From Thalia democratica (lineage: Eukaryota), in contig OZ241831.1 in NCBI GenBank assembly GCA_965202585.1, positions 46,252,001-46,316,000 on the forward strand: DNA of 64,000 bases. Direction: 5' to 3'. The position numbers were made by a program, and so were the translations under genes. A model generated the notes under the pieces. The model was not told where the DNA came from. It did no database searches and saw only the letters and a program-made list of their open reading frames with translations. Shown here one piece after another: positions 5,892 through 61,380 of the stretch; position 1 is the first letter of the stretch, and every line of letters begins with the position of its first letter.

Positions 5892-6298
5892 CCGATCATT
5901 TCTAACCCGCTATCATTTCTAACCCGTTCACTTCTAACCCGATCGTTTCTGACCCGATCACTTCTAACCCGACCATTTCTAACCCGATCACTTCTAACTC
6001 GATCACTTCTAACCTGATTACTTCTAACCCGATTACTTCTAACTCGATTATTTCTAACCCGATCACTTCAAACCGATCATTTCTAACCCGATCATTTCTA
6101 GCCTGATCACTTCTAACCCGATCACTTCTAACCCGATCGTTTCTAACCCGATCACTTATAACCCGATCACTTCTAACCCGATCACATCTAACCCAATCAT
6201 TTCTAACCCGATCACTTCTAACCCGATAATTCCAAAAAGAGCATTTCTAACCCGATCACATCTAACCTGATCACTTCTAACCCGATCGTTTCTAACCC
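5892..6298 (+). repeat. 15-bp minisatellite, consensus (C/T)TTCTAACCCGATCA, about 27 degenerate units
   Basis: Directly visible tandem array; the reverse complement of the unit (GGGTTAGAA(A/G)TGATC) forms the array at 28035-28432. Confidence 0.95.
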
Positions 6299-6816: not shown

Positions 6817-6820
6817 ATGT
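6817..6820. repeat. Left copy of 4-bp target-site duplication ATGT
   Basis: ...taaATGT|TATAACC at the left end and ...CTTGTTATA|ATGTtg at the right end (25107-25110). Confidence 0.85.
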
Positions 6821-7499
6821 TATAACCACTGACCGATGGCTCGGTCGTAGTTAGGTTAGGTAATTGCTTATTATTGCTTTTCGCCTTAGTTTGCGACCGC
6901 GTCATGCGTTTTATGTCGTCCATCGATAAGCGTTTGGACGACATGAAATCTTAGTTAAAATATATATATATAATATTAAAACGTTCTAATATATATTCTA
7001 ATATATATTCTAATATAATTATAAAACGTTCTAATGGAACGATCAATAACTTTAATGTATTGAGCTTATTTATAATCTAGTATCTAGAAAACAACTTTAA
7101 GTGAATGGTGAATTTATATACATTTAAAAACAAAACACGACAATGTGATAAAGTAACGTGATGAAGTTCTACCACAACTGACTCGAGGTTTTCTTAAGCT
7201 TAGTGACTGTACGCTGGTTACAATTTACAAAACTCAAGCAATTCTACTATCCTTTGCAGAGCTTCTATTCCCTTTGCCCAATCCGTCAACAACCCCACAA
7301 CAACCCAAAACATCCTTTTAACACACTAAGAAAAACTTATTTATTTTTTTACTCTCTTCTCTACTTACTACGTCACGCACAAGTCTTTCTGTAATTTTCC
7401 ACTTAAAACTTTGACTCCTTTGATGTAAATTCCACTTAACTTATCTTTGACTCCTTCATTGTACTTCTCGAAACAAGTAGTAAACTACTACTTGTTATA
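6821..7499 (-). repeat. 3' LTR (679 bp)
   Basis: Matches 24428-25106 at offset 17607; I found one mismatch (7119 T vs 24726 A). Termini are the 6-bp inverted repeat TATAAC/GTTATA. Confidence 0.95.
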
Positions 7500-7519
7500 C
7501 TACCCTTCCTACCTTACTT
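7500..7519 (-). promoter_or_regulatory. Polypurine tract (PPT), sense AAGTAAGGTAGGAAGGGTAG
   Basis: Purine-rich run directly abutting the start of the 3' LTR on the sense strand. Confidence 0.85.
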
Positions 7520-7583
7520 AATTGATTTGTTTTTATCTTCTGAGTGCTAAAATATTTGAAGTTATTTTCTCGTTCTAGCTTTT

Positions 7584-7625
7584 GAAACAAGTAGAAGCTA
7601 CTACTTGTTATACTACCCTTCCCTA
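7584..7625 (-). repeat. Second copy of the PPT plus the first ~30 bp of the LTR, 113 bp upstream of the true junction
   Basis: gaaacaagtagaagctactacttgttatactacccttcc (7584-7622) vs gaaacaagtagtaaactactacttgttatactacccttcc at the 3' LTR start. Confidence 0.85.
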
Positions 7626-8184
7626 ACTTCGTTTTTTTTTTTAATAATCTAAATGAGCACTTGTAGTTTGTATTTACTTTTGCTAGGCTAAAACCTCTAC
7701 CCAACTTAAGACACTGCACCCAAAAAAAACCTCACTACAGTCGTTAGTAGAACTAAGAAAAAGTTAAATTACGAAATTAATTTTTTACAGGAAACTGTAA
7801 AACTTTACCTTAAAACATGAATTGTTCGAGACTCAAAATATGAGAAAATAAACACGAAAAAATTATGCTAGTATTTAAATTTACTGGAAGTCTCTATCAC
7901 TTCTTAATCTAAGTTTGAACAATGTTAATTTGGTTAAGCATGACAAAATAAAAAGCATTTTCATTGAAATAAAAATAAAATTCTTTAATAAAACAATAGT
8001 TTTCAGATTAATAGTTATTTTTAAATACTAAGAAAAACATTTTTTTGTAGAAATACACTAATATAGTTTTTTAAAACGATTAAAAAAATTAATTATAAGA
8101 TGTTAGCAATTACACACAATTTTTAAAACAGAAAAAAAAAATTAATTAATACCTAAGCTACAATTTGTCTTGTAAGTTCACGTA

Positions 8185-8452
8185 CACAGCTTCTCGTTGA
8201 TAGGAACCTTCCGTTGCTGGAAAAGGAAATCTCTCGGACAAGGGGTTCGTTCTTCTGGGGAAAACTCGTAAAACACAGCTTCTCGTTGATAGGAACCTCC
8301 CGTTGCTGGAAAAGGAAATCTCTCGGACAAGGGGTTCGTTCTTCTGGGGAAAACTCGTAAAACACAGCTTCTCGTTGATAGGAACCTCCCGTTGCTGGAA
8401 AAGGAAATCTCTCGGACAAGGGGTTCGTTCTTCTGGGGAAAAACTCGTAAAA
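8185..8452. repeat. 89-bp tandem repeat, 3 near-identical copies, in the 3' untranslated part of the retroelement
   Basis: Units start at 8185, 8274 and 8363 (cacagcttctcgttgataggaacc...ctcgtaaaa). Confidence 0.95.
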
Positions 8453-8511
8453 CCTTGGTGGAAAAGTGCTAGGGACTTAAAACTTAGCTTGATTGAGAGG
8501 AAAACAGAGTG

Positions 8512-10590
8512 CTACATCGAACTCGGTTTGTCTTGTCCGAAAAACTCTGGTGTATTTAAATTTGTCTCATTTACACAAGGGAACCAATGCGACAAATGAT
8601 CTTCGTTTTTAAACGTTTCTTCTATTTCCGGAAAAGTTCTAGCTTCTTTAGAAACCGATTTCAAGGCCGTTCCCACCTGGAGGCAGTTCGAGATTCCGTG
8701 CGACTGTTCCATAACCTCGGCTGTCCCATCTCTTTCATCTCCATTTTTCCAAATCTTTGATAATAACCCTCCGTCATTTGCTACTTTCTCTTTTTCTTTT
8801 TTTATAGATGACTTCGAGATTCCGTGCGACTGTTCCATAATCTCGGCTGTCCCATCTCTTTCATCTCCACTTTTCCAAATCTTTGATAATAACCCTCCGT
8901 CATTTGCTACTTTCTCTTTTTCATTTTTTAAAGATGACTTTTGTTTTTTATTCAATTTTTTACTGTCTGTCTCAATCTCTTCCTTTCCTGTGTCTCTATA
9001 TTTCATCTTGATATTTGGTTTATCCTCGGACGCAGTTCTTTTCACGACATTGATATCAATATCTCCACATTGAATAGAAAACAGGTGGTGTGTATTTGTT
9101 TTTGCTTTGCAAAATCTCTCGAGTCCATCTTGAATGGTCAAGCAACTCATTTTTTCATCTTCTATATTTTTCAGTTTAAGCTCTTTAACTTGTTGTTTCC
9201 ATTTGACTATTTCTTTACTATGTTTTTCTTCATGCTCTTTGTTTGCCTGTTTGAGTTCCTTTAACTCTTTCAAGAGATTTGTTATTCTTAGTTTTTTAGT
9301 TCTTAGTTTTTCTTGGACGTTTTCCTTTTTTCTCTTTTGCTTATTTAATCTTTCTTGTAATATTTCAATGGTATTGTTGGCATTAAGTATTTTGTCACAA
9401 AGCTCAGTTCCTTCCTTTCTTAAATTTATTCCGTCCTGCGTTAAGTCATTTATAACTTCACTTTTTTTTCTAAGTTCGGCTTTTAACCTTTCTACTTCAG
9501 TTCCCAAAAATTCCATTGCCCCTTTCACGCTAGAATCATTAAATGATTGTACAGCTTTCTTTATGAGTACTTCTTGTAAAAGTTCCACTAACTCATTTTC
9601 TTGGAGAGTTTCTTCCCCTTCATGTGTAACATTTGAAAGATTTTTTTCATCCTCAATTACCATAACTTTTGTTGCATCCTTTTCTTTAATAACCTCTTTT
9701 TGTTTGACCATTTTCTTGACATTTTTTTGGTCGTAGGCAAGGTGAGACTCTTTAGAATTTTTAACAAAACTTCCCACATCTTCGAGGTTGTTAGATCTTT
9801 CCTTTGCAACTTCCATTTCACTTAAAGTGTGCTTTTTTAGCTTAGTTGATGATTCATTTTCCACTCCTTCAGATATCTCCGTCTCTTGCATTTGAACTTT
9901 GCTATTTTCTTTTCGTTTCTCCTCCGTCGTATGTAAAATTTTTACACCAGATTGAGTTCGTACCTTTTGTGGTTTTGTTTCTTGAATCGTACCATCTTCT
10001 TTTTGCTTTTTGTTAGTTGTCTGGGCTGCCTCTTCGCTAGTTGGCGTTCGTGCTCTTTTCGTTGGCATAGTAACCTGCTTCCCACTATTTCCTTTTTGTA
10101 TGTTATTTGTCGAGGAAAATGTCCTATCTCCTGATTGCGTTTCTACTTTTCTTGATCTCGTAGCGCTGATATTTATTTTCATATGACTCTCCTGAATATT
10201 TTTTGATGTTGTCCATGACCCTTCATTAGATTGCCATCGTCTCGATGGCATTGTATTCCTACTCACATTCCTAGTTGGTTCGTATCTTGATTTGTTGAGT
10301 CTCATAACTTCTTCTCTTCTTGGCTGGTTATTTCTTAATGAATAGTTTGATCGTCTATAATATGAGGACCTGGAAGGTGGCGTTCTTCTATTGTCCCAGC
10401 GATAATAACTATTTGTTCGACGTATAATTCTTCTGTTTTCCGTTCTACCGTCATATCTTCTATCTTCAGAATCATATTTGTCTCTTCTGTGATCACAATT
10501 TTTGTTTCCATCGATTTCTGTTAAACTATCAGTTTCGCTTGCCAACAAAGACACAGCGTCTTCGGATTTGTTCGTGCTGTTACAACTCAT
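8512..10590 (-). CDS. Retroelement ORF3, 692-aa protein of unknown function: Arg/Ser/Tyr-rich basic N-terminus, central coiled coil, duplicated 42-aa C-terminal unit
   Basis: 2.08-kb uninterrupted ORF in AT-rich DNA, ATG preceded by AAAA, same strand as gag-pol and env, inside the LTRs. No family recognised. Confidence 0.85.
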   Translation of the reverse strand: MSCNSTNKSEDAVSLLASETDSLTEIDGNKNCDHRRDKYDSEDRRYDGRTENRRIIRRTNSYYRWDNRRTPPSRSSYYRRSNYSLRNNQPRREEVMRLNKSRYEPTRNVSRNTMPSRRWQSNEGSWTTSKNIQESHMKINISATRSRKVETQSGDRTFSSTNNIQKGNSGKQVTMPTKRARTPTSEEAAQTTNKKQKEDGTIQETKPQKVRTQSGVKILHTTEEKRKENSKVQMQETEISEGVENESSTKLKKHTLSEMEVAKERSNNLEDVGSFVKNSKESHLAYDQKNVKKMVKQKEVIKEKDATKVMVIEDEKNLSNVTHEGEETLQENELVELLQEVLIKKAVQSFNDSSVKGAMEFLGTEVERLKAELRKKSEVINDLTQDGINLRKEGTELCDKILNANNTIEILQERLNKQKRKKENVQEKLRTKKLRITNLLKELKELKQANKEHEEKHSKEIVKWKQQVKELKLKNIEDEKMSCLTIQDGLERFCKAKTNTHHLFSIQCGDIDINVVKRTASEDKPNIKMKYRDTGKEEIETDSKKLNKKQKSSLKNEKEKVANDGGLLSKIWKSGDERDGTAEIMEQSHGISKSSIKKEKEKVANDGGLLSKIWKNGDERDGTAEVMEQSHGISNCLQVGTALKSVSKEARTFPEIEETFKNEDHLSHWFPCVNETNLNTPEFFGQDKPSSM

Positions 10591-11018
10591 TTTTAATTAA
10601 ACAAAAATGCTGTTAAGAAGAATAATTGTTATCCAAACGTTATTATATATATATTTTATTTATTTATTTATTTTTTTAATATTTTTATATTTTTTAACCA
10701 ACTCATGTTTTATTTTTTTATTTTTGGACAAATATTATTTTCAGTAAATTTTATAAGTTCATATTACTTACTTTACTCTATTGTTTCAATGCATTCTCAA
10801 TTTAAGTATACTGTGGCTCTGTTTTTTATTTTTTTTTTATTTTTTTTTTTTATTTTTTTTTTTATTTTTTTTTTTTTTTTGAAAGTGATGTGATGAAGAA
10901 ATAATGTGATTAATATTATAATAATTATCCCTGACCTTGTTGCTAATGAAGGAAAAAGGAAAAACAAAAAAAAATAATAAAACCAATATATACATGATCA
11001 GTAACGGCCACCTATTTC

Positions 11019-12734
11019 TCATTTTTTATCCCCCTCATTTGGTTTTTTTCCACATTTCTCCCTTAATGTTTGAATAATAACAACAACAATTAAGATTGTT
11101 GCTATAATTGTATAAATATGTCCTAAAAGTCCTAAGATATTCTTAATTTTCTTCCAAATCGAATATTTAATTTTTTCCAGCATGGCCCTCACATTGTTGT
11201 AGTCCATAGTATGCGTTTCTGCCAGTAATTCTTCTATGTTGATTCCATCACTTATATATTCTTCCTTGGTAATTAACAACAAGTTCTTGAGTTGCTGCTG
11301 TGTAACATCTTCTTCAGACCAAGAAACTTCTTGTAAGTCTTCATTTAGGTTTTCCTCTAAGATGTCGAAACTTTTTTCCTCTAGTTCAACATTTTTTATT
11401 GTAATCTTTTTCAGTGCTGGTATTTGATCGATTAAGGTATTGTTATTATATATTATCAAGCTGTTATTGAAACTAAATGTCTTTCGTTTAGTAGGTGTAA
11501 CTGTAGAGCTAATTTTTTCCGTAAGAAATCTTCCTTGGCGTAGTGATGTAAGCTTTGCTTCCGTGCCAGTATAGGCCACAAATAGTGGCCTATCTGACAC
11601 ATGACCATTATAATATAAATTAGGCTGCAAAACTGCTTGGACTTTTGAGCACCTCAGTTCTTTTAAAATCCCTCCTGCGAATATAGCCTGTACCTCTCTT
11701 TCGAGAAGATAAGACAAAACTTGAGATGGATTTAGACTTTGACTTCCCATAAGGGCTACTATATTTGCCCGTGCCATTTCACAGGTAACTAATTTAAAAT
11801 AGTTCCTAAAATTTTCGCTGTTCAAAAACGATCCATGTGCAATAGATGTAATTGTGGCTTGAATATTTCGTAGTGATGCTGGTATATTATCATCTGCAGT
11901 TCCAATTGGCTCAATGTTGCTTTCCTCAGGAATTTCCAGCACATGATTGGTCATTGTACAAAAAAATTTCGATTTTTTCTTTTGTTTTAGGCAGGCTAAT
12001 GATTTTGGTGAGCATTTCATCAGGTTAGATACAATTAAGTTTGTTTCGTCTAGTTCGAATAAGTTTCCTTTTGAAGTTTTATGAATTATTAGAGTTTTAT
12101 TTTCACTCCTCGGTATAGTTTCACAGGTTTTTTCTCTAGGTTCTACATAATTGATTCTCCAGTTTCCTGCTGTGCAAGTTTTGAATTTTCTACTGCAAAA
12201 CAATTTGCCCAACGATATGTGATGTAGTTCTTCTGTCACCACATTTTTTGTAATTGTTAGATAGTTTAATTCAACATTTTTTACTTCTATTAGGTTTCCA
12301 AACCATCCATATTCCGGTTCCAAAATGTTTTTCGTAGTCATGGATCCTTCCGCGTTTGGTAAGAGTCTCCCAACCGAAGTGAAGTGTCTTTGTTCCCACA
12401 ATTCACACTCCCTCTTTGTTACTAACTGGTGTTCCGTTCTTACTAAGTTGCAGACATTACTGCCGAAAAGGTAATGTATGCAGTTATAAGTATCTTTTGT
12501 CATTCTGCAAGCTTTTGCCCTTAAGTTATACATTTGGTTAAAAGGTTTAAAAACCCTTACTGGGTATATTTTAGTAGTGTTTCCTTTGTTTATGCATTTC
12601 CCAGGGGGTATAATTTTGAACTGTTGTATTACCTCATTCTTGCAAAGGTCTATATATACCTTCCTTGTTATATCTGAATAGACCATAGCTAAGCAAAGTG
12701 TTGTTATCCATAATGTTTTCATGACCAGCTTCAT
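11019..12734 (-). CDS. env: Env-like type I membrane glycoprotein, 571 aa, class III viral fusogen-like (chuvirus G / herpes gB / rhabdovirus G-like motifs)
   Basis: Hydrophobic signal peptide (MKLVMKTLWITTLCLAMVYS), Cys-rich ectodomain, N-glycosylation sequons (NTT, NKT, NNS, NNT), C-terminal TM (IYTIIATILIVVVII) and short basic tail. CRMTKDTYNCIHYLFG and NPSQVLSYLLEREVQAIFAGGILKELRC resemble class III fusogen motifs. Confidence 0.8.
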   Translation of the reverse strand: MKLVMKTLWITTLCLAMVYSDITRKVYIDLCKNEVIQQFKIIPPGKCINKGNTTKIYPVRVFKPFNQMYNLRAKACRMTKDTYNCIHYLFGSNVCNLVRTEHQLVTKRECELWEQRHFTSVGRLLPNAEGSMTTKNILEPEYGWFGNLIEVKNVELNYLTITKNVVTEELHHISLGKLFCSRKFKTCTAGNWRINYVEPREKTCETIPRSENKTLIIHKTSKGNLFELDETNLIVSNLMKCSPKSLACLKQKKKSKFFCTMTNHVLEIPEESNIEPIGTADDNIPASLRNIQATITSIAHGSFLNSENFRNYFKLVTCEMARANIVALMGSQSLNPSQVLSYLLEREVQAIFAGGILKELRCSKVQAVLQPNLYYNGHVSDRPLFVAYTGTEAKLTSLRQGRFLTEKISSTVTPTKRKTFSFNNSLIIYNNNTLIDQIPALKKITIKNVELEEKSFDILEENLNEDLQEVSWSEEDVTQQQLKNLLLITKEEYISDGINIEELLAETHTMDYNNVRAMLEKIKYSIWKKIKNILGLLGHIYTIIATILIVVVIIQTLREKCGKKPNEGDKK

Positions 12735-13126
12735 TATACTATCTACCTTCCAGCTTAAATTTTCTTATTTATAACCAAAACGAGAGAGGTGGGAGAAAAA
12801 AAAATAGTTCGCCAAAAAATTTTTTTTTTTAAATTTTTAATTTTTTATTTTTTTTTTTTTTTATTTTTTTTTTTTATTTTTATTTATTTTTTTTTTTTAT
12901 TTTTTTTTTTTGCCCAATCATCTTAGTATTGAGAGCGGAAAAATAACAACATCAAAAAATAAAATTAATAATAAGCAAGTAACTTTAACTTCCACATTAA
13001 TTATACTTCATATGATACACGGTAATTTTGTGTGACAATTTCAAGTGCTCGAGTTTAAAGTGACATGGTTATGGAATTTCTCAAAAAGAATCATATATCT
13101 GATATATACAAAATTAATACGATGGC

Positions 13127-13450
13127 TTAATTGGTCTCTCCCACCATTCCAAAATACGGTTGGTTATAAATGATGAAATACCTTAATTTCATCTCCAAAT
13201 TGAATAGTGAAATATCTTGAAAACTTATCATGTGAGTAATTCCTACAAAACCTATTGCGTACGAGCATTTCTCACTTACTTCGTTTTCAAAAAGGAAATT
13301 AAAATGGGTGCAGAAATTTTTTATCATATTACTGTTTGAACATTCATATAAATGAAAATTTTTATGTAAGAATTCTTTAAAGTTCTCATTCGAATTTATA
13401 TAATTATAGAAGTCTTCTCCATATACGGGGTTAATCATAAGTAAGAACAT
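13127..13450 (-). CDS. Possible small 107-aa retroelement cargo ORF, unknown function
   Basis: ATG-initiated ORF on the element sense strand, long for this AT-rich region, followed by an A-rich tract. No homology recognised. Confidence 0.35.
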   Translation of the reverse strand: MFLLMINPVYGEDFYNYINSNENFKEFLHKNFHLYECSNSNMIKNFCTHFNFLFENEVSEKCSYAIGFVGITHMISFQDISLFNLEMKLRYFIIYNQPYFGMVGETN

Positions 13451-14205
13451 TACAATTTTATCTAAAATAGTTATAATTTTTAGGGTGATTACTAATCAAT
13501 ATGCCTACAATAAATTTTACTTTGCTAAATTAGCTCAATTAAATTGAAGATGTAAAAATAAAATAAAAAAATAAAAAAAATTAGTGAGGGATGGAATAAC
13601 AATATGGCTAAAAAAAATACAAAACAAAACATTTTCTGAGGTAAAACTACTTAATTAATTCAGTAATTCATAAAAAACTATAAACTTGTGTTTCGTAATT
13701 ATAAATATAGACAATCATATTTAAACATTCATTTTTATTATTAATTATATCTGCTTATTTGCTATTTAAATCTAAAAAAAAATAACAGATATTATGATAT
13801 TGAAATTCAATATTATTTAAAGTTAAGTAATTAGAAAAATTACATAAAAAACAAAAAACTTATAACAAAACCTAAATATTGTTTTTTCAATTTTGTAATA
13901 AACTTGATGTCCGTTTTTCCATGACCCTTTCAACTTCGTCGTTTTTTTTCTGACAGATGTCTCGTGGAATTGTCAAGCAAAAAGGTATATTCTTGTCTTC
14001 ATCATGGACGTTTGAATTTAAAAGCAAAGTTTCTTTCGTAGAAACATCATCATAAAAAAATATTTCATTTGGAGTATCTTTTTCCAAATATTTTCGAGCA
14101 GTTTAGCTCGGAATGTTTTCATAGTTCAACTATCTTTATAAAATAATAAATATTTTTATTTCTATTTAAGAAGTTTAATTAATTTCTATTTAGGTGAGTT
14201 CCCTC

Positions 14206-14505
14206 TCAACTTATTCGTCCCCACATATCTTCCATATCAACTTATTCGTCTCCACACATATTCCATATTAACTTTTTCGTCTCCACACTTCTTCCATATC
14301 AACTTATTCGTCTCCACACATATTCCATATCAACTTATTCGTCTCCACACATATTCCATATCAACTTATTCGTCTCCACACTTCTTCCATATCAACTTAT
14401 TCGTCCCCACACATATTCCATATTAACTTATTCGTCTCCACACATATTCCATATCAACATATTCGTCCCCACACATATTCCATATCAACTTATTCGTCCC
14501 CACAC
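14206..14505. repeat. 31-bp minisatellite (TCAACTTATTCGTC(T/C)CCACACATATTCCATA), about 9.7 copies, inside the retroelement
   Basis: Directly visible tandem array between gag-pol and env. Confidence 0.95.
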
Positions 14506-17500
14506 AACGACTATCTTTCAGTTAATATTACTGGAGCTGATTACCCTTCCAAACTTAAAAAAAATTTTACCTCACATAAAATGATAAATATTTCTGAGTT
14601 CAGCCAACGAAGTTCGTTTAAAATATTGACAAATTGATAAGTTTCATTATGTAGTGTCACGGGAATAGAATTGCATCCTCCAGACTACTAACTTTTAGTT
14701 TTTTATTTGTTTAAAGTTTATTTATTAAATGTTTTTTTTTTTATGTTTAACATAATGTCATGATTTGACAACTTTAAAACACTTGATTTGTGGTTATTCT
14801 ACTGGCTTAAAATAAAAAACTATATTTATATTATTTTTATGATATACGATGCACTAAGATTAATATAATTAAGTGAATACTTAAATTCACTGTTAACATG
14901 CCATGCGAGGTTGTTTACGAGTTAAGTAGTTAAACTAGCAATTAAAAAAAAAAAAGACCAGAACTTTGCGCTTTTTTAAAAAAAAACAAAATTTCTTCAT
15001 CATAAATGAATAACATCAACAATATATATATACAAAAAAAAAAAAAAAAATAAGATAAATTAATATGAAAACTACAACAGGCAGACTATACATATAGTAA
15101 CTATAAATCATAATATATTTCTAAGCATGACATAATGAGAATAAACTTAATAAGTAATTTGTAGTTTAAGACAATGAAATTTCTACATCGATGCTCAAAC
15201 CCATAAAATGCCTTATGCATAATATCAACATAACTGTTACCTAAACAAATCACAACCGCTTGTGAAGCTATAATCAAAAGTTTATATACTTATTTTTTAT
15301 ACACTTTTTAAGCAAACATTAGTGGAATTTTTTTAGACATTAAGTAAGATTGTTAAAAAATAGATAAAGCTACCCAAACTTTATATTTTTTTTATAATTC
15401 ATTTTAATAAACTTAATTAATAAGTTATTAAAGCAAAATATTTATTATATTATTTAGATAATTTAATGAAAATAATTAAATGATAACAGTTTTTTAATCT
15501 AAATTCACAGAAATATGTTTGATAGTTATTGTATCATTATAGCAATCAATAGTTAAATATTAAATGTATTAATTAACTTTTTACTAAATTATCATTATAA
15601 CTTTATCAATAGATAAAAATCACTTTAAGTTATCAAAATAGCTTTAACCCTACAGAGAAAACTAATTATTAAACTAGAAGTTTGCCGTACAATGTGACGT
15701 AATATATCAACAAATTGAGTAAGTATTTCTTTTAAAATTATGTTACAAGAGACTAATAAGACAATTAGTTAATAAAATTAAGTGTTTTGGTAAGAAAAAC
15801 TTTATAGTACTTTTAGGTTCTGTTTTGTTATCGATTTAAAGTCAAACGCCATACTAAATAAATTAAAGCCAGATGTTATGAAAATTTAACAATTGTTATT
15901 TACTCCTAACGTTTTAGATTTTATCGATAAGAAAATAAAATCCGAGTGAAATTTAAATTGATAAGAAAGTTTAACTTTTACGACAGTAACTATAAAAAAT
16001 TATCAGATGCTTGTAAAACGAAAATAGCAAGTTTTATTTTGTTATTGTTTGAAAAATTTATTTTTAACAATTTTTTATGTGAAAATTTACAAGAACTGTC
16101 AATCATTACTCCTATTTGTTTATGATTAAAGTACATTTTTACTGCTGTAACTTATTCTTAAAAAAAATTCGATTTTTTATACGACGGGAATTTTATCACA
16201 AACAGGTGCGGTTAAATAATTTAAACTCCTTCCGTTGTGTTAACAATCTTTAAAACATTGTTAAAAAAGATTTAAAGTTAGGCTATAAGATTGTATTGTA
16301 ATAATTTAAAGTTTGAAAATAAATATTCTTAAAGTTATTAAGTATTGTGTAGTTATTATACACAAATTGTAATTAGAATATACTAAAACATTCTAAACTT
16401 CTTATATTCTTAATGAAAATCCACTAACAAAAATAATAGCGACATAATTATACACATGACATAGTTAAATAGTTAAATGTAAACAACAAAACTTTTTTAT
16501 TTTTTTTTATTAAATAATATTTGAAACTTTTTTATGTTTTTTTTATCTTTTAATTTTATATTTTTCTTATTTATTCTTTATTTTACCAACTAAACATATG
16601 AAAATAAAATAACTTAAAATTTAGTATATTGAGTAACAAAAAAACATTTAAATGTTTTGATTATTTTGAACAAAATGAATCTAATAAATATTAGTTTGCA
16701 CTTAAGCAAAATCGAAGTTACCTAACTATACATTATGTCAAAATTATATAAAAAATCATTTTATAAATATTATCACTGTTCTGTTTAATTATTATCATCT
16801 CTAATATCTCGTATCAATATTTTATAGTTACGGTGTTAAACATAACAACACATCAAAAAAAATTAAAAAAAAAATTTCTAGTTTTAAGAATTGAAGTCTA
16901 TAATGATAACAATAATTATTGAGTGAAGTCATAACTGTTAATATTATTCGTAAAGTAATTTGTTTTAAAACGCAGGATAACGTTTGATGTGTTTAAATGT
17001 GTTTCTAATAATGTTCCTCTATTTTTTCAAATGAAAGTATTCAATTTTAATTAACCCACATACTACAATAACATATAAGCTTAAACTTTGGATAATAAAT
17101 TATAATTTAAGCAACATATATTTGTTTAATAATATAAAATTTCAACATCTCTACTTATTGTTTATTTAATTATAATACCAAGTAGTAATAATAAAAAATA
17201 TATAAAAAAAAATTATCTAAATAATGAAAAAATAAAATAGTTACTAACAGTTTAATTGATTTCTTCCGAATGAGCTGAATTATGTAGAAACAAGATTTCT
17301 TCAAAACTGGTCTAAAAGTTATTCCTATTCGTCTGCATCGTGACCTTCCTTTCATATTCCCTCACGCGCAGAATCAATAAGTATCCTAGATGTTGTCCTG
17401 CTTCCTGTCGATCGCTTAAATTTTCCTAAATGTTTCATAATCGACTATTTAACACTATTTCCCGCTAAGTCTACTGTGGCTCTGCATAATTTTTAGTTTC

Positions 17501-19403
17501 CATGTTCTAACTTAGGTCCAACGATAAGAAAAAGTAATGTATTTGACCTCTCCCAATTTCTAGAATAGATTTTCTAAAAATAGTGTTAAGCTCTGCTGTC
17601 CATTTTCTATACTTCATAAAGCTTCATATGGCCAACAAACAAATACGTAAAAATGTTTATCCACCAAAATTTTGTTTTCCATGTTCTCCTTTTAGGCCCA
17701 ACGATAAGAAAGGATAAAAGTTAATATAAAAGTAAAAACTACTGCCTTATTGAAGTATGAAATTGACGTGTTGTAAAACAACGCGTACTTTATTAATTGA
17801 TTATTATTCGCAACTCAAGAATTTAAATTATGGTACTATAATTTATCATAGATTAAAACATTTTTAAAATCATTAACAATTAAGTTAACATAAGTAGTGA
17901 GATTTCCTTACAAATATGTAATAATATAAAAAAAATAATATAATAATATTTAACTCTTTACTATTATAATACATATTTAACAAAACACAAAAAAAATCTC
18001 AGTATGCTACATATAATTCTAATGTAACTAAAAAAAATTTTGAAGTCTGAGCTTTCCTTTCAGTTGATTTTTTTTATAAATGTTTCTTGAAAAGCAGATA
18101 TATATGATCACAACAAAAGAAAAAAATCTTAAATATCTTCTATCAAAATTGTAACTACTTGATAAAAGTTTAATTATCTTCAGTTTCTTGTTCAATTGAA
18201 TTCCCCTGACTCCTATACTTGAAATAATTCAATTTTGAATAAGTTGAAAAGTTTAACTTAATAAAAGCACTCAAGTTTTCTTAGCTTCTTAAATGATCCA
18301 AGTGCTGGCAAAATAAATTTATGCCACAACTTTTTAAATATTTAAATTTAAAAAGTTTTGTGTAAACATTTTCATTAATCTAACAATTTCTAATTTTAAG
18401 TATCGCGTTTTTTATTTTTTTTAATTTTATTATATTTTATTTATCTAAATAGTTACAAATATTAATCAATTATTCGCCGACAAGCTAAAAATTTATACTA
18501 AATAATATCAGCTGGGAATATTATTACAAAATAAAACAAAATAAAAACATTTATTTTTCAAAATCCTTCAAAAAATTTAAAAAATTTGTTTCACTAATTA
18601 TATTCCCATGTTAATTAAATGTCACAATTTCGAATACAAATCCTTTGTGTATAACATCGCATATTAAAAAAATTAAAATATTCGTTTGCACTTATTAACA
18701 AAATTTATTAAAAAACAAATTTTATTCAAAAGCTAATTTATTATTCTCATGCTTTACTAATTTCTATTGACAAAAAGTTTCATATTATATTACAAAGGTG
18801 TTAAATGAAAGCTATAGCATCTTATGCATTTATATAACATGTTAAATAAAATCTGAAACAATATTTATTTACTCATGCCCATCGATGCTTTATACTCGTA
18901 ACATCGATACAAGATTTATAAATACTGTTAATACATAATATAATACATTATTCTAAAATTGATAGTTTATAATATTAATTATTCAAAAAATTTTTTTATA
19001 AGTTTTATGATTTTTGGAAATTTTTATTAATTTTTATTATTTTTTTTATATTTTTTATTTTTATTTTATTTTATTTTATTTTTATTAAAAATTTTTTTAT
19101 TATTATTTATGGAAAAAATAAAAAAAAATTAATTACATGCAATAAGATGAAAAAGTAACACAACAAGTTGATTACAATCGCTTGTTTAGGCTTAAACAGG
19201 CCTTACTAAATTAACACAAAAAAAATCTTAATAAATAAGTATTTCGCACTCAATTGCTTATTGTAACGAATCACACAGCTATGCTTTAATATTAAAACTA
19301 TTTTTATATATCATGCTAACTAAAACAATATTGTACGAATAAAATATTTTGAACATGTCAATCTGATTAATGTTAGTTCCTACTCTCAATTCAAAACTTA
19401 CTT

Positions 19404-22400
19404 TTAATCGGATTCATCGTATGTGGTAGTGTCTATATCTGCGTAGTTTAGTTCAATATTTCTTTCCCTCAAATTGTATGCAGCCGTAGGTCCCAATTTG
19501 TTACCCTCCGCGTCGAGTTCCTCACGAGGGAAATACCCTTTTACGTTTCTTAATGAGACTTTTATCGGTTTACCATTTTTTTCTATGATCATGGAGTGAT
19601 CGGAATAAGAAAGTATTGGGTACGGGCCGTGATATTGTGCACTCAGATGTGATTTATTCTTTTTTCGAATCCACACTTTCTCACAGTCAAAAAGACCAGG
19701 CTCATAATAAGTATGCTTTTCTGTGTAGCATTTATGTTTTCTATATGCATTCGACATCGTATGAAGGAAGAAATTTGTTTCATAAGTGTCAATCTCCTTA
19801 TGGTTGTTGCTGACCTTGTTGAAAAATATCCTACCACTTATATTCGTGCACGTTCCTAATGCTAATTGCGACGGAGTAAACAGATTCCCTTCAATAAACG
19901 AGTTGTTAATGGATGTAGTTATCAGAGGTAAGAGCATAGACCATTTTTCTTTATCGACTAACGTTCTTAATGCAACATTAATACTTCTGTGTTGTCTTTC
20001 AACAAAACCATTACTTTCCGGACTATAAGGTGGTACGTATCGATGGTCTATACCTAATTGTTGGAATACTTCCTTGAGAAGGCTATTATTAAACTCACAT
20101 CCATTGTCTGTGACAATAACTTGTGGTACTCCAAAAATCCCGCACCACGATTGTATCAGCGCATTTTTTACTGTCTGAGCTTTCTTATTAGGTAAAGGTG
20201 TAGTAACCAAAAATCCGGTACCTCTGTCTTTGATAGTCATAATATATTTGTTATCATCTGAAATTACATTCATTGGACCAATAAGATCCACATGAATAAA
20301 TTGGAAACGTTCTGTATTCTTTGGATACAGACCTATTTTAGGTCTATTGTGTCTAAAAGTTTTAGTAGCTTGGCACTCGGCACAGCTCTTACACCAATAT
20401 TTTATGTCAGTCTTCAAAGTTGGCCACCAGTAATCCTTTGCAGTCGCTATTATAGATCTTTCTACTCCCAAATGTAGATATCCGTGAGCTAATTCAAATG
20501 CTGTCAAACGTAATATCGAGGGTAAGATTATACGTTGGTTATCTCCTTCTTGGATTACTGCTAAGTCCTCCGATCCCACATATTTTATTTCCTTTTTTAA
20601 TTCTTTGGCTTTCTTTAATAATAAAGGTTCGTTTTTTTGAAGTTGGGCTATTTCTAACTTATTTAATGATGCCGCTGTTATTAACTCTTCTTCATTTTCA
20701 GTCAGATCATCATCTGTGTCAGAACAGCTCAAATCTGTGTTTGAGTTATGAACATAGTCTGGATCGTTATCTTGTAGGGCTATGTGCATGGATGTGCTAT
20801 GAGGTGGTCTGCTTAATATATCGGCTACTATGTTATCGGCACCAGCTATATGTTTTATAAAAGGGTTAAACTCCTTGATTGCCGCGATGTAACGTTGTTC
20901 CATTGGTGACTGATCTTTAATTGGATTTGTGATTGCTTTTTCTACTGACTGACTGTCGGTCCTAATAATAAGTTCACGACCAATTATCCTACTTTGAAAA
21001 TGTTTCAAACTTAAATACAGAGCCCTTAGTTCTTTATAAAAAGTAGATCTATATCTCTTAAGGCTAGGAAGTTTTTTTGAAAAGAACGCAAGAGGCCTTT
21101 TATTTCCATCTATTCCTTCCTGCTCCAACACCGCCCCCACATGAGTTTCGGATGCGTCTGAGTATAATATTAATGGCATATTGTGATCTTCATAAGCTAA
21201 GGTTGCTGCCTTTGCCAACACCTTCAATGTATCCTTATATGCATTAATTTGGAATTGATTTAGTTTTAGTGGTTTTTTGTTAGTAGCTTTGGGTCCTCCA
21301 GACAATTCGTTAAGTGGTGCTATGATTTCAGATAATCTTGGAATGTGATGGTAATAATAATTGACTAAACCGATGAATCTTTTTAGTTCCTTTCTATTTG
21401 TTGGCCTCGGTAAATTAATAATTGCTTCCACTTTGCTATCCATGACACCTATACCATCGGCTCCAATTGAATGTCCTAAAAAGTCTACTTTTGATTCTGC
21501 TATTATACACTTCTTAGCGTTCAAATACAGTCCACTATCTTGTAATGTTTGAAGCACCTTTCTAAGATGCAATTCGTGATCTTTTTTAGTTTCACTAAAA
21601 ACAAGTATGTCATCCAGATAAACATAAACAAAACCTGTGCAAGGAGTCAAAATATCTTCCATCATCATCTGAAAACGCATCGGCGCATTCATGAGGCCAA
21701 ATGTTGTGCGATGAGGGATAAACACACCATGATGAGCAATTATAGCAGCATATTTTTGAGAGTTTGGGTGAATTGGAAGACTGTAGTACGCTTCTTTTAA
21801 GTCAAGACAGGAAAAAATTTTTGACCCATTTGGAATAAACTCAGGAAGCTCATCAATGCGAGGCAATGGGTATGAGATTGGGTTTGTGTGGGCATTTAAG
21901 GTTGTATAATCTATGCAGATTCTTATATTTCCATCCTTTTTTGGTACCATCGTAATTGGTGATACATATATTGCTTCTTGTCCTCTTGACATTGCCCCTC
22001 TTATTATTAAATCGTTAAAATTTTCCTCAACTATTTTACGTCTCATTCCGTTGCATTTACGTGCTTTAATCATTCTTGGTACTAGATTATTTACTTTTAT
22101 CTCAAGTGAATGTCCATGTTTAACTGGTTTATTGTAATCTGGTTCCATCGTAAGTTCTTTGAACTCCTCAAGTATGCTTTTTATATTGTTTTTGTCATCT
22201 GATTTCTCTTGGTAACTAGTTATTTTGAGTTTTTTACATGGTCCCTCAGCAGCTGTGGTTAATTCCCCAGCTGTATATAGTCTGGCTTTACGATTTAAAT
22301 TGTATTCAAGAATTTCGGAAGTGTGAGGTGAAATAATTAGTTTGTTAGCTTTGAGTATATCCAATCCAATAATTCCATAGTCCCCCGATTCCTTGGTAAC

Positions 22401-24551
22401 CCAAAATGTGGCTTTTTTTAAAAGCATATTTCCAATGCTGAGATCCACATCTACACTCCCTATTGGATAAATGGTTGAGTTTCCCAAACCCTTTATTGTT
22501 TTACTTTTTGGCTGGAAATATTGATTTATTCCATTAGTTAACATTTTCGGTAAGATAGACACTTCACTACCTGAATCGATTAATAACAAGACTCCCGATT
22601 TTTTTTCCAGTGCGAATAGGAGGTTTTTAGGAAGATTTTTTATATCGGTTGTTTCTGTTTTATTTTCTAAAACTGAGCATTGTTTAACCGGAACATTACT
22701 TTTGTCCAAAACCAATTCGTTTATCTTTTTCAAAATATTTTCTAGATTGTTGTTTATTTGATCTGTATTTCCCGAACATGTAGGCATTGTACTTTCATGA
22801 ATATCATTCTCTTTCGTTCCTTTCATGCTTACCGTTAATGAGCTCTTTTGATTTACAAAACTATTTTCTGTGTTATCCACTGGTATTGCTTTGTAACTGC
22901 AGTTTTTATTATCTTCGTCGTATAACTTAGTTTCCTTGTCCTTTGTTAAGTCTGTTTGCATAACAGCAACGTTGCAACTTTTCTGTTGTTGGTGATTCGC
23001 AATTAGATGATTCATCTTACAATCTTTCCTATTACAAGAGTAAGCCTCTTTTCCGTATCGCCAATGTTGATAGCATAAGTCACCCTGGTTTGTAAACGGA
23101 TTTGGTTTTGCACTAGTTTGTTGGTAGTTCCAATTATTGTTATTGTTTTTATTGTGTGAGTAAAAATCTGGAATTTGATGATTTCGATACGGTCTAAAAT
23201 TTCCGTTGTTGTTATTGTTGTAATTAAAATTATTGTTTTTATGTCCGATATTTCGATTGTTATACCTTCTAGGATTTGTACTATAAATTTGATTAGTTCG
23301 TGGCGTTCTATCATAATTTACCGGATTGGAAGGTATTTTTTCCTCTTGACAATTCCAAATACCTTGTGTCCTTCTCTTGAAGATATCATAGTTTTCATTA
23401 AAGTTTTCTCTGATTTTTGTTTTCAATGAAAGTGGACTTAAGTAGTAGCAGAAAAATTTTATGCGGTCAACTTTGCTGCTTTCTGCGAATTTAGTTGCAT
23501 CTGCGAGGAATACACCAAACGGGGTAGAAGCATCATATTGTGGTACCTTACTGAGAATATCGCTCAGAGAGTCGTCCCTATTAACACAAAAATCACAGAA
23601 TGATTCGAAGTTTCGATGTTCCCTGTCCACTAATCTATAAAAATTCGAAACATCCTCAGTTGGCCATTTTTCGATAAGTATGTTATACTTCACGTAATCA
23701 TCACGTATGTTAAGTCGATGAAATTCTTCCTGGAAATACCCCAATACATCTCTAGGATTTTTTACTTTCTCTATTCTGTTGAATTTTTTTATTAATCTGT
23801 CCATTTCCATATATTTTCCATATACTGTATGGTTTGAGTTAATATTATCAAAATTTCTATTATAAATATTTTGGTTCTGCATATAATCTTCGTCGCAAAA
23901 GTTGTTTTTATTTGCATACATGTTATTACTGATGTGATGCGTCATGTTATTATCTGTATGTATAAAGTTTTGACTTGTGATCAGATTTTCCAGTTTATTA
24001 TTATTTTCACAAATTTTCTCCCTTATTTTACGAATTTGTTCTTCCGCCTGTTGTCTTCTAAGGTTTTCTTCGCTTATCTTAAGTAATTTATTCATTTCTT
24101 CTATTTGTATTTCATAGTCTGTTTTCTTAATAATGTTTAAATTATCCTGGGTCGAAATGTTATTCTGTTGAAAAAAAATTTTTTGATCATTTTCTAACTT
24201 CGTCGAAGGTATTTTATCCATTTCTGTTTTTTTATTTGCCTGTATAATTCGATCATTAAATAAAGTTCTAGCTTCGTCATAAGTTGGTGTATTGACCTGA
24301 AAGGTTAATCCTTCTGTATCAGTTTTTTTACCTTCTTCGCCCTTATTTTCAACATTTCTATCATTCGGTCCGCTATTCGCTGTTTCATCGAAAGGTGGTA
24401 CATCTGTGCTTGTAGGGAGGACGCCATTATAACCACTGACCGATGGCTCGGTCGTAGTTAGGTTAGGTAATTGCTTATTATTGCTTTTCGCCTTAGTTTG
24501 CGACCGCGTCATGCGTTTTATGTCGTCCATCGATAAGCGTTTGGACGACAT
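19404..24551 (-). CDS. gag-pol: Gag-Pol polyprotein, 1715 aa, single frame, Ty3/Gypsy, CsRn1/Kabuki-like
   Basis: CHCC-type finger CYQHWRYGKEAYSCNRKDC (23019-23075); protease LIDSGS (~22570); RT SPITMVPKKDG...YLDD (21609-21620); RNase H YSDAS (~21155); integrase H-x3-H...C-x2-C, HVDLIGP, TDNG, VER and GPY (~19620). Confidence 0.97.
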   Translation of the reverse strand: MSSKRLSMDDIKRMTRSQTKAKSNNKQLPNLTTTEPSVSGYNGVLPTSTDVPPFDETANSGPNDRNVENKGEEGKKTDTEGLTFQVNTPTYDEARTLFNDRIIQANKKTEMDKIPSTKLENDQKIFFQQNNISTQDNLNIIKKTDYEIQIEEMNKLLKISEENLRRQQAEEQIRKIREKICENNNKLENLITSQNFIHTDNNMTHHISNNMYANKNNFCDEDYMQNQNIYNRNFDNINSNHTVYGKYMEMDRLIKKFNRIEKVKNPRDVLGYFQEEFHRLNIRDDYVKYNILIEKWPTEDVSNFYRLVDREHRNFESFCDFCVNRDDSLSDILSKVPQYDASTPFGVFLADATKFAESSKVDRIKFFCYYLSPLSLKTKIRENFNENYDIFKRRTQGIWNCQEEKIPSNPVNYDRTPRTNQIYSTNPRRYNNRNIGHKNNNFNYNNNNNGNFRPYRNHQIPDFYSHNKNNNNNWNYQQTSAKPNPFTNQGDLCYQHWRYGKEAYSCNRKDCKMNHLIANHQQQKSCNVAVMQTDLTKDKETKLYDEDNKNCSYKAIPVDNTENSFVNQKSSLTVSMKGTKENDIHESTMPTCSGNTDQINNNLENILKKINELVLDKSNVPVKQCSVLENKTETTDIKNLPKNLLFALEKKSGVLLLIDSGSEVSILPKMLTNGINQYFQPKSKTIKGLGNSTIYPIGSVDVDLSIGNMLLKKATFWVTKESGDYGIIGLDILKANKLIISPHTSEILEYNLNRKARLYTAGELTTAAEGPCKKLKITSYQEKSDDKNNIKSILEEFKELTMEPDYNKPVKHGHSLEIKVNNLVPRMIKARKCNGMRRKIVEENFNDLIIRGAMSRGQEAIYVSPITMVPKKDGNIRICIDYTTLNAHTNPISYPLPRIDELPEFIPNGSKIFSCLDLKEAYYSLPIHPNSQKYAAIIAHHGVFIPHRTTFGLMNAPMRFQMMMEDILTPCTGFVYVYLDDILVFSETKKDHELHLRKVLQTLQDSGLYLNAKKCIIAESKVDFLGHSIGADGIGVMDSKVEAIINLPRPTNRKELKRFIGLVNYYYHHIPRLSEIIAPLNELSGGPKATNKKPLKLNQFQINAYKDTLKVLAKAATLAYEDHNMPLILYSDASETHVGAVLEQEGIDGNKRPLAFFSKKLPSLKRYRSTFYKELRALYLSLKHFQSRIIGRELIIRTDSQSVEKAITNPIKDQSPMEQRYIAAIKEFNPFIKHIAGADNIVADILSRPPHSTSMHIALQDNDPDYVHNSNTDLSCSDTDDDLTENEEELITAASLNKLEIAQLQKNEPLLLKKAKELKKEIKYVGSEDLAVIQEGDNQRIILPSILRLTAFELAHGYLHLGVERSIIATAKDYWWPTLKTDIKYWCKSCAECQATKTFRHNRPKIGLYPKNTERFQFIHVDLIGPMNVISDDNKYIMTIKDRGTGFLVTTPLPNKKAQTVKNALIQSWCGIFGVPQVIVTDNGCEFNNSLLKEVFQQLGIDHRYVPPYSPESNGFVERQHRSINVALRTLVDKEKWSMLLPLITTSINNSFIEGNLFTPSQLALGTCTNISGRIFFNKVSNNHKEIDTYETNFFLHTMSNAYRKHKCYTEKHTYYEPGLFDCEKVWIRKKNKSHLSAQYHGPYPILSYSDHSMIIEKNGKPIKVSLRNVKGYFPREELDAEGNKLGPTAAYNLRERNIELNYADIDTTTYDESD
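24409..24426 (-). promoter_or_regulatory. Primer-binding site TGGCGTCCTCCC...
   Basis: TGG starts 1 nt after the 5' LTR end; complementary to a tRNA ending ...GGACG-CCA. Primer identity not established. Confidence 0.75.
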
Positions 24552-25106
24552 GAAATCTTAGTTAAAATATATATATATAATATTAAAACGTTCTAATATA
24601 TATTCTAATATATATTCTAATATAATTATAAAACGTTCTAATGGAACGATCAATAACTTTAATGTATTGAGCTTATTTATAATCTAGTATCTAGAAAACA
24701 ACTTTAAGTGAATGGTGAATTTATAAACATTTAAAAACAAAACACGACAATGTGATAAAGTAACGTGATGAAGTTCTACCACAACTGACTCGAGGTTTTC
24801 TTAAGCTTAGTGACTGTACGCTGGTTACAATTTACAAAACTCAAGCAATTCTACTATCCTTTGCAGAGCTTCTATTCCCTTTGCCCAATCCGTCAACAAC
24901 CCCACAACAACCCAAAACATCCTTTTAACACACTAAGAAAAACTTATTTATTTTTTTACTCTCTTCTCTACTTACTACGTCACGCACAAGTCTTTCTGTA
25001 ATTTTCCACTTAAAACTTTGACTCCTTTGATGTAAATTCCACTTAACTTATCTTTGACTCCTTCATTGTACTTCTCGAAACAAGTAGTAAACTACTACTT
25101 GTTATA
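24428..25106 (-). repeat. 5' LTR (679 bp), containing the first 41 codons of gag
   Basis: Near-identical to 6821-7499; followed on the sense strand by the PBS. Confidence 0.95.
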
Positions 25107-28034: not shown

Positions 28035-28432
28035 CGGGTTAGATCGGGTTAGAAACGATCAGGTTTGAAATGATTGGGTTAAAAATGATCGGGTTAAAAA
28101 TGATTGGGTTAGATATGATCGAGTTAGAAATTATCGGGTTAGAAATGATCGGGTCAAATCTGGTTGGAAATGATCAAATTAGAAATGATCTTGTTAGAAA
28201 TGATCTTGTTAGAAATGATCGGGTTAGAAATGATCGGGTTAGAAGTGATCGGGCTAGAAGTGATCGGGTTAGAAGTGATCGGGTTAGAAGTGATCGGGTT
28301 AGAAGTGATCGGGCTAGAAATGATCGGGTTAGATATGATCGGGTTAGAAGTGATTGGGTTGGAAGTGGTCGGGTTAGAAATGATCGGGTTAGAAGTGATC
28401 GGGTTAAAAATTATAACGAGTTAGAAATGATA
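28035..28432 (-). repeat. 15-bp minisatellite GGGTTAGAA(A/G)TGATC, about 26 units, inverted relative to the 5892-6298 array
   Basis: Directly visible; accounts for the spurious repetitive ORFs 28070-28510 and 28164-28424. Confidence 0.95.
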
Positions 28433-60721: not shown

Positions 60722-61380
60722 TTAAGGGCATCTTAAAAAACGTATGAGAAGATAGGTTTTATGTGAAATAGTCTTTTTTTACAATTTTAGTTTGCGCCTT
60801 CCATAAGGAACCTATTGTTGTCTCCAACTTTGACCGGCTATATCTCAAAAATTATGTTGAATTTTTAAAATCTGTAAAAAGCATCTTGTAGCTTAGTTAA
60901 AACTCTATAAAATAAGATCAATTTGTGGAAACAGTGTCAAAATGTAGTTACTAATAATAATAAAACATTTTAATAATAATATCCTTAATAACTATAAAAA
61001 GAAAACCAATGATAATCATATTGATACTAAAGGCGTAGGTATAAATCAATTTTTTCACAATTTCCTCTTAGTTTATAGAGTTTTAATCAAGCTACAAGTT
61101 GCTTTTTGCAGATTAAAGTTCAAAATAAATTTTGAGATATAGCAGGTAAAAGTCGGAGTCAACAATAGGTTCCTTATGGGGGGCACAAAGTAAAACGGCA
61201 AACAAAGTCTGAAAGTTTGAGCTAGTTATCTCTAAAAACGTAGGAGAAGATAGATTTTTAGTGAAATAGTCTATTTTTGCCGTTTTATTTTGTGCCTTCC
61301 ATAAGAAACCTATTGTAGTCTTCAACTTCGACCTGCTTTATCTCAAAAAAATTTTTTTATTTTAAAAATCTGTAAAATTA
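60722..61380. mobile_element. Rearranged fragments of the same TIR family as 62548-63223 (direct, inverted, direct)
   Basis: Shared blocks such as ccataaggaacctattgttg, ctatatctcaaaa and aaatctgtaaaaagcatcttgtagctt occur in both orientations; starts ttaa-gggcat. Confidence 0.75.

Follow-up and report, generated by a model that had tools for sequence, protein, structure and literature searches.

A 64,000-nt stretch of the Thalia democratica genome (GenBank assembly GCA_965202585.1, contig OZ241831.1, positions 46,252,001 to 46,316,000 of the forward strand; hereafter the window, whose numbering is used throughout) contains an 18.3-kb Ty3/gypsy retrotransposon at positions 6821-25106 on the minus strand. 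With a probability of about 0.85, we identify it at its core as an env-carrying Ty3/gypsy element that encodes a class III fusogen and was inserted recently as a single 18.3-kb unit. It is best explained as an autonomous Metaviridae endogenous retrovirus-like unit of an AT-rich marine animal, of the kind called 'ancient errantiviruses'. Ty3/gypsy elements with a glycoprotein B (gB)-type env are already known as a general kind; set against the sections of PMC13524379 cited here, the new features are a long spacer between pol and env, a third gene (ORF3) and the size of the element.

Structure and integration of the element

The element reads from 25106 to 6821. Its direct long terminal repeats (LTRs) of 679 bp each differ by one mismatch (7119 versus 24726), and ATGT abuts both outer ends as a 4-bp target-site duplication (TSD). 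One base past the 5' LTR, the sense strand carries TGGCGTCCTCCC, which starts with TGG and resembles a primer-binding site (PBS), and 17 of the 20 nt preceding the 3' LTR are purines, as in a polypurine tract (PPT). Within the 5' LTR, TATAAA occurs at LTR positions 382 and 426. The boundaries and flanking signals are listed below.

6817..6820, no strand: TSD copy beside the 3' LTR, ATGT on the + strand
6821..7499, minus strand: 3' LTR, 679 bp, one mismatch to the 5' LTR
7500..7519, minus strand: PPT, 17/20 purines, abutting the 3' LTR
8184..8453, minus strand: 89-bp unit in three tandem copies in the ORF3-PPT interval, G+C-richer than the rest
24415..24426, minus strand: PBS-like sequence with TGG start, 1 base beyond the 5' LTR
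24428..25106, minus strand: 5' LTR, 679 bp
25107..25110, no strand: TSD copy beside the 5' LTR, ATGT on the + strand

Three open reading frames (ORFs), all unbroken and all on the minus strand, encode 1715 (gag-pol), 571 (ORF2, env) and 692 (ORF3) amino acids. Given their own base composition, the chance of their staying open was approximately 1e-59, 1e-20 and 1e-24, respectively. The LTRs, TSD, PBS-like site and PPT-like tract together correspond to the structural definition of a Ty3/gypsy element. An earlier examination of the window (the original prediction) had proposed this LTR pair, the ATGT TSD, the PBS, the PPT and the three ORFs, and we found all of them in place on the minus strand; its view that the element is intact and young was also borne out. 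The accompanying description of the lineage as potentially infectious rested on inference and is overstated. One structural feature weighs against our reading: the LTR termini are TA...TA, with the 6-bp inverted repeat TATAAC/GTTATA, which is atypical compared with TG...CA. A tRNA matching the PBS was not found, as the 64-kb window yielded no tRNA gene and no Rfam match.

The gag-pol gene and its affinities

The gag and pol regions form one frame, within which the following features were located.

24551..19404, minus strand: gag-pol, single ORF of 1715 aa (ORF scan, Pfam and motifs)
23019-23075, minus strand: CHCC-like Gag finger
22350-22589, minus strand: protease (DSG)
21465-21947, minus strand: reverse transcriptase (RT; YLDD)
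20811-21251, minus strand: RNase H
20019-20522, minus strand: integrase zinc domain and core

The first ATG of this frame is LTR position 556, that is, 124 nt inside the 5' LTR, and the frame crosses the PBS, beyond which the first in-frame Met is residue 111. Pfam matches along the protein were gag-asp_proteas (residues 655-734, weak), RVT_1 (869-1029), RT_RNaseH (1101-1228), Integrase_H2C2 (1344-1398) and rve (1416-1511), with two RNase H models matching. The resulting order, protease-RT-RNase H-integrase, is that of Ty3/gypsy. Motif inspection revealed DSG in the protease, YLDD in RT, DAS, and GPY near the C-terminus. Among solved structures, the closest to pol was Ty3 Gag-Pol 7q5b (E 1.8e-73 over RT, RNase H and integrase), followed by enzymes of caulimovirus, foamy virus and murine leukemia virus. 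The Ty3/gypsy identity given in the original prediction is thus supported by both the domain order and the best structural match. The interval separating the RNase H match from that of the integrase zinc domain is approximately 96 residues, too short for a second RNase H. The Gag part had no Pfam or PDB match and contains one C-H-C-C finger, CX2HX9CX4C, at residues 493-511.

The original prediction had also pointed out traits of the CsRn1 clade. Members of this clade have a CX2HX9CX3C finger, a tRNA-Trp PBS, a 4-bp TSD and no ENV, and one of their strategies is to fuse gag and pol into a single ORF (PMC2582038). The present element resembles CsRn1, PwRn1 and AgCR in its fused gag-pol ORF, 4-bp TSD and GPY in the integrase tail, as well as in the C-H-C-C order of the finger with the first two spacings equal, and the DSG protease was also confirmed. 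It differs from the clade as described there in the last finger spacing (X4 here, X3 in the clade) and in the presence of env. Moreover, the nearest full relative (metagenome contig L001, whose pol is 61% identical to that of the window) has no Cys/His finger in Gag, and its protease has DTG, not DSG. Because the last spacing of the finger is one residue longer and L001 is fingerless with DTG, CsRn1 membership is not established from these motifs, and the element is not filed in that clade.

The env gene and its predicted fold

11019..12734, minus strand: env (ORF2), 571 aa, predicted class III fusogen fold

ORF2 is predicted to be a type I membrane glycoprotein, with a hydrophobic signal-like N-terminus, an ectodomain, a transmembrane segment at approximately residues 532-561 (Kyte-Doolittle score >1.6) and a short tail. 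It has four N-glycosylation sequons and 16 Cys residues, 14 of which are invariant in 10 aligned sequences. An AlphaFold (AF2) model from the relatives' alignment gave a predicted local distance difference test score (pLDDT) of 75-93 over residues 50-270. Foldseek comparison of this model with the PDB returned 118 matches at E<=1e-3 (best E 5e-9); among the matches listed, those at the top were herpesvirus gB and the G proteins of vesicular stomatitis virus (VSV), Chandipura virus and rabies virus. In BFVD, 193 matches were obtained at E<=1e-3 (best E 2.6e-11), led by rhabdo-, chu-, nyami- (nyavirus) and xinmovirus glycoproteins together with herpes gB. With its 571 aa, env comes nearer to the length of mononegavirus G than to that of herpes gB. 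These results indicate that the modeled env has the fold of class III viral fusogens, and the fold matches in both databases uphold the earlier proposal that the env-like ORF2 is a homologue of viral fusogens.

Several results weigh against this assignment. The Pfam herpesvirus gB family PF00606 matched env at E 0.0048 and 16.8 bits, below its gathering threshold (cut-off 43), and the env family profile found nothing among PDB sequences. The mean pLDDT of the model was 55, with residues 313-483 below 50, and the template modeling (TM) scores of the Foldseek matches were 0.2-0.3. Since no sequence-level link passes a curated threshold, the likeness of env to gB is stated at the level of fold only; since the TM-scores are low, it is the fold class that is supported, not the domain arrangement or conformation. 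A phmmer search of ORF2 against the PDB was considered as a sequence link and rejected as a chance match, and an exact look-up of the ORF2 protein returned no record.

Relatives of env and linkage to pol

A search of 5.8 billion proteins revealed 11 clusters of env relatives with 37-96% identity, all from ENA marine metagenome assemblies, many of them from Tara Oceans. Profile searching found no relatives beyond the same 11 clusters, and none were found in the JGI metagenomes and IMG/VR. The family was absent from the annotated protein sets searched and was present in marine metagenome contigs only. An LTR-PBS 20-mer match in the JGI metagenomes (L019, a 92-kb contig with 49% G+C) was dismissed as chance, there being no other similarity to the window. 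The ratio of nonsynonymous to synonymous substitution rates (dN/dS) of env was 0.10 between the window and L004 (93% identical) and 0.06 between L005 and L007, values that point to strong purifying selection on env.

The most distant env relative, P0011 (37% identical), lies 748 nt downstream of pol, with gag before pol (L001, L002). In L001, the first 251 nt recur at the end of the contig, 9190 nt further on; this contig is therefore regarded as a compact gag-pol-env element of ~9.2 kb that was assembled in circularly permuted form. The linkage of the genes indicates that env belongs to this pol lineage.

The pol-env spacer and the long layout

The interval between pol and env and the two A-rich tracts of the element are located as follows.

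12735..19403, minus strand: pol-env spacer, 6.7 kb
12820..12913, minus strand: sense-strand A-rich tract at the spacer's 3' end, its last base 85 nt before the env ATG
10817..10884, minus strand: A-rich tract (sense strand) in the env-ORF3 interval, beginning 135 nt after the env stop

The spacer has a G+C content of 17-30%, similar to the host background (approximately 24% in the window outside genes). It contains a 31-bp tandem array of 10 copies (14199-14506) and no ORF longer than 107 aa. No internal pair of LTRs or terminal inverted repeats (TIRs) was detected, nor any similarity to the rest of the 64-kb window or to the relatives' DNA. A nested transposon was accordingly ruled out as the source of the spacer, given the missing LTR or TIR pair and the lack of repeats in common with other parts of the window. 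The spacer was already present at integration, as the single TSD and the near-identical LTRs enclose the whole unit. At a threshold of >=85% A over 40 nt, the two tracts above were the only ones in the 64 kb on either strand, and both are on the sense strand of the element. An A-tract 130-250 nt past the env stop recurs in L005, L008, L015 and L017, and not in L001.

Long intervals ahead of env were also observed in relatives. L005 and L006 (env 57% identical) have at least 4.8 kb upstream of env without pol similarity. Within this region, L005 has ORFs of 525 aa (1669-3246) and 154 aa (3873-4337), whose counterparts in L007 (2-697 and 1409-1852) are 61% and 54% identical, respectively; the env of L005 and L007 is 56-57% identical to that of the window. 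Both ORFs encode coiled-coil-like tails, and they showed no similarity to ORF3 or the spacer and no significant Pfam family. These sequences suggest a turnover of accessory genes within the family.

The long layout may alternatively be secondary, the mobile form being a compact gag-pol-env element of ~9-10 kb, with the spacer, and maybe ORF3, representing captured host or repeat DNA. The copy may then be poorly mobile or a dead end, or a misjoin at the A-rich tracts during assembly may have produced the spacer. The pol-env gap of just 748 nt and the 9190-bp unit of L001 are consistent with such an origin, as is a spacer that has no ORF, has a G+C content fitting the host background and not the element's genes, and terminates in a 94-nt A-rich tract like a captured polyadenylated RNA. 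However, the LTRs show a single difference in 679 positions, and one TSD surrounds all 18.3 kb, which places the spacer there at integration. The spacer contains no TSD, LTR or TIR and no match to the remaining window, L005 and L006 have their own stretch without pol similarity before env, and ORF3 is constrained and is linked to env in L015. We therefore regard a secondary origin of the long layout as unlikely and retain insertion as a single unit. Against the latter stands the finding that the metagenome contigs showed no further copy of the complete 18.3-kb layout, which is attributed to the breaking of these contigs at A-tracts.

Signals ahead of env

Two sequence features precede the env ATG.

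12766..12773, minus strand: TATAAATA box, TATA-like, 39 nt before the env ATG
12781..12804, minus strand: pyrimidine tract of 24 nt ending in CTCTCG, 47-70 nt before the env ATG

In all five relatives aligned, the env ATG is preceded at 35-50 nt by a TATA-like box, and most of them have the CTCTCG run. The pyrimidine tract with CTCTCG also occurs in L004, L015, L005, L007/8 and L017. In the elements Tor3b and Tor4b of Oikopleura, the capped env transcripts originate from an internal promoter, whereas Tor3a splices (PMC4402516). An internal TATA-box promoter may well drive env here too, a prospect that we place a little short of even. Two points weigh against it: L017 has the CTCTCG run with no clear TATA-like box, and the TATA-like match sits in very AT-rich DNA.

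Alternatively, the messages for env and ORF3 could arise when the LTR-driven genomic RNA is spliced, the route taken by gypsy, retroviruses and Tor3a, with the pyrimidine tract and an AG upstream of env serving as acceptor. The 24-nt tract is followed by AG dinucleotides and is common to six lineages, a pyrimidine run with CAG is also found ahead of the ORF3 ATG, and splicing is the usual route (PMC4402516). However, the spacing between the TATA-like box and the ATG is maintained even in L001, which has not kept the pyrimidine tract, and splicing would imply an intron of ~11.5 kb for which no donor was identified. Splicing is a possibility that we hold only tentatively, and the conserved position of the box makes the internal env promoter appear somewhat likelier.

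ORF3, a candidate accessory gene

8512..10590, minus strand: ORF3, 692 aa, orphan, putative accessory gene

Approximately 70% of ORF3 is predicted to be disordered, including the N-terminal half. Arg and Ser are abundant in its first 130 residues, and the protein has a net charge of +19. In the structural model, residues 1-327 and 497-692 are disordered, and one long helix of ~145 residues (353-497) has a pLDDT >90. The C-terminal part includes a 126-bp (42-aa) tandem duplication at 8687-8938. On the opposite strand, a 200-aa ORF antisense to ORF3 (9134-9736, plus strand) has no family match; the purine-rich sense strand probably gave rise to it as a by-product.

A word-indexed search found two close relatives of ORF3, and HMMER against 1.84 billion representatives found seven, all fragments, with 57-97% identity. 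L013, a Tara contig, shares 98.7% identity with positions 10822-8813 and contains a second intact ORF3 of 630 aa; the 126-bp unit occurs twice in the window and once in L013, and the frame is open in both. A further copy from the Tara metagenomes (L014) is 89.6% identical. The dN/dS of ORF3 was 0.45 against L013 and 0.43 against L014, suggesting that ORF3 is moderately constrained, far less than env. In L015, where env is 64% identical, a short A-rich tract separates env from ORF3-like sequence downstream (tblastn match to ORF3 residues 10-136 with 38% identity, E 2.7e-9). The env-ORF3 order therefore predates the copy in the window and is not a one-off chimera; env and ORF3 had been anticipated to be missing from other copies in that case, and the pairing instead recurs in this diverged relative. 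Broken copies were also observed, with at least one frameshift each in L014 and L016 and at least one in-frame stop in L015, so that decaying copies also exist in the family.

By analogy with CERV, described below, ORF3 might act as an accessory factor in RNA handling or regulation, a role that we consider doubtful. Two negative results weigh against it and leave the role a guess: ORF3 matched no Pfam family and, in the PDB, gave a weak coiled-coil match only (E 0.043), and HMMER found no homologue outside the family among the 1.84 billion representatives. The same results fit another explanation, in which ORF3 is a non-functional, young and decaying passenger, either a captured fragment or a de novo frame in purine-rich sequence. 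Its high predicted disorder, a dN/dS below 1 by a moderate margin only, the interrupted copies in L014, L015 and L016 and the polymorphic 126-bp unit are in keeping with a passenger. Yet 692 open codons would arise by chance at ~1e-24, L013 is a second intact copy, the dN/dS of 0.43-0.45 comes from two independent comparisons, and the N-terminal part is still recognizable in L015 despite the divergence of env. We consider it improbable that ORF3 is such a passenger.

Proposed expression and replication

The features of the element suggest the following scheme. A full-length RNA running from LTR to LTR would serve as both genome and gag-pol message, with one frame and no frameshift, and the polyprotein would be cleaved by the DSG protease. 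A host tRNA would prime at the TGG... site, and the PPT would act as the plus-strand primer. Env would be translated from a subgenomic message, made most probably from the internal TATA promoter or, alternatively, by splicing onto the pyrimidine tract. ORF3, a basic and disordered protein with one long coiled-coil-type helix, may be the element's accessory factor, which is the weakest step of the scheme. The 6.7-kb AT-rich spacer would be non-coding cargo copied with the element.

Surroundings of the element in the window

A 15-bp unit, CCGATCACTTCTAAC, or its reverse complement forms two arrays of ~27 copies each (5892-6298 and 28042-28431) that flank the element in inverted orientation at distances of 0.5 kb and 2.9 kb. 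Similarity is confined to the arrays themselves and does not extend into their surroundings. Either a host minisatellite or the termini of a larger foldback-like unit that received the insertion could account for them.

Approximately 22 kb from the element, an open frame at 46954-47196 (minus strand) matches the second RNA recognition motif (RRM2) of PTBP1, with E 9e-22 to PDB 1sjr and no Pfam report at E<=0.01. This frame probably represents an exon from a PTB-like gene of the host, which therefore has an animal-type PTB. A 264-aa ORF at 29507-30301 (minus strand), locally 36% G+C, encodes a hydrophobic segment and a charged, helical-looking tail; it has no Pfam or PDB match and is either a host exon or a gene of another mobile element. 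Clustered direct and inverted repeats of 150-195 nt with 85-88% identity at 60730-63213 resemble short non-autonomous repeat copies.

Comparison with known systems

Chary and Hayashi (eLife 2026; preprint 2023) reported intact Ty3/gypsy elements with ENV of the F type or of the HSV/gB type (HSV, herpes simplex virus) across most animal phyla, with hosts including cnidarians, ctenophores and tunicates, and found that ENV and POL co-diverge (PMC13524379). In the sections of that survey considered here, the 'ancient' type of bridge is an RNase H with a mini domain and without a duplicated RNase H, and the gB-type ENV is a trimer built from five domains (I-V), domain I bearing hydrophobic fusion loops. 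The present element resembles the gB-type elements of those sections in having gag, pol and env uninterrupted on one strand between LTRs; in an ENV with a signal peptide, a Cys-rich ectodomain, a transmembrane segment and a class III fold; and in env and pol divergence that runs in step and a marine invertebrate host. The RNase H-integrase gap of ~96 residues, which has no room for a second RNase H, may also fit the 'ancient' bridge. It differs from them, as they are described there, in the 6.7-kb pol-env gap, the 18.3-kb length, the 692-aa ORF after env and the CHCC-like finger. The LTR-gag/pol-spacer-env-ORF3-LTR layout, which the original prediction did not recognize from described families, is thus real and unusual; its kind is already described, and relative to these sections only the spacer, ORF3 and the size fall outside the described range.

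Env-carrying Ty3/gypsy elements have only lately been recognized as ancient and widespread in animals, and the filters given in the cited part of the survey exclude elements such as this one. Those filters allow a POL-ENV gap <=1 kb and regions 3-10 kb long, or an ENV that lies no more than 3-5 kb from POL (PMC13524379); a gap of 6.7 kb and a total of 18.3 kb therefore lie outside them. Current catalogues probably under-count long or complex forms, and an intact 18.3-kb member implies that such elements can hold much more than gag-pol-env.

Tor3b and Tor4b of Oikopleura dioica are likewise Ty3/gypsy elements with an env for a membrane glycoprotein (PMC4402516). Their env promoter is in or after pol; here, the counterpart is a conserved TATA-like box that is read from sequence alone. 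Unlike the present element, the Tor elements are compact, and the ENV types differ, Tor4b grouping with F-type elements. The conserved box provides sequence-level support, from a second animal lineage, for an env promoter so far known from Oikopleura Tor only.

For ORF3, the closest parallel is CERV of Cer1, a Caenorhabditis elegans Ty3/gypsy element, which is an orphan nuclear protein required for export of the genomic RNA (PMC10309623). Both are orphan accessory proteins, putatively so for ORF3, in Ty3/gypsy elements, with helical or zipper parts and basic clusters. CERV has no sequence similarity to ORF3, is encoded by a five-exon spliced message sharing gag exons, and replaces env, whereas ORF3 is a separate frame added to env; the likeness concerns a possible mode of action, not membership. 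Bdelloid rotifer LTR elements also carry captured extra ORFs (PMC5408684), which share no sequence with ORF3. Speculatively, and with low confidence, the family might constitute a 'complex' invertebrate endogenous retrovirus lineage, with its own env promoter, lineage-specific accessory genes (ORF3 and the 525- and 154-aa ORFs of L005/L007), kilobase-scale cargo and a Rev- or CERV-like ORF3.

Capture of such env genes is not confined to Ty3/gypsy. Tas of Ascaris, reportedly described by Malik et al. in 2000, is said to be a BEL/Pao retroelement with a captured class III fusogen gene. Mosquito BEL/Pao elements with a chuvirus-like G have also been described (Dezordi et al. 2020, as cited in a section of PMC13524379). 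Both share with the present element a gB/G-type gene inside an LTR retroelement, but they belong to BEL/Pao, whereas the element described here is Ty3/gypsy.

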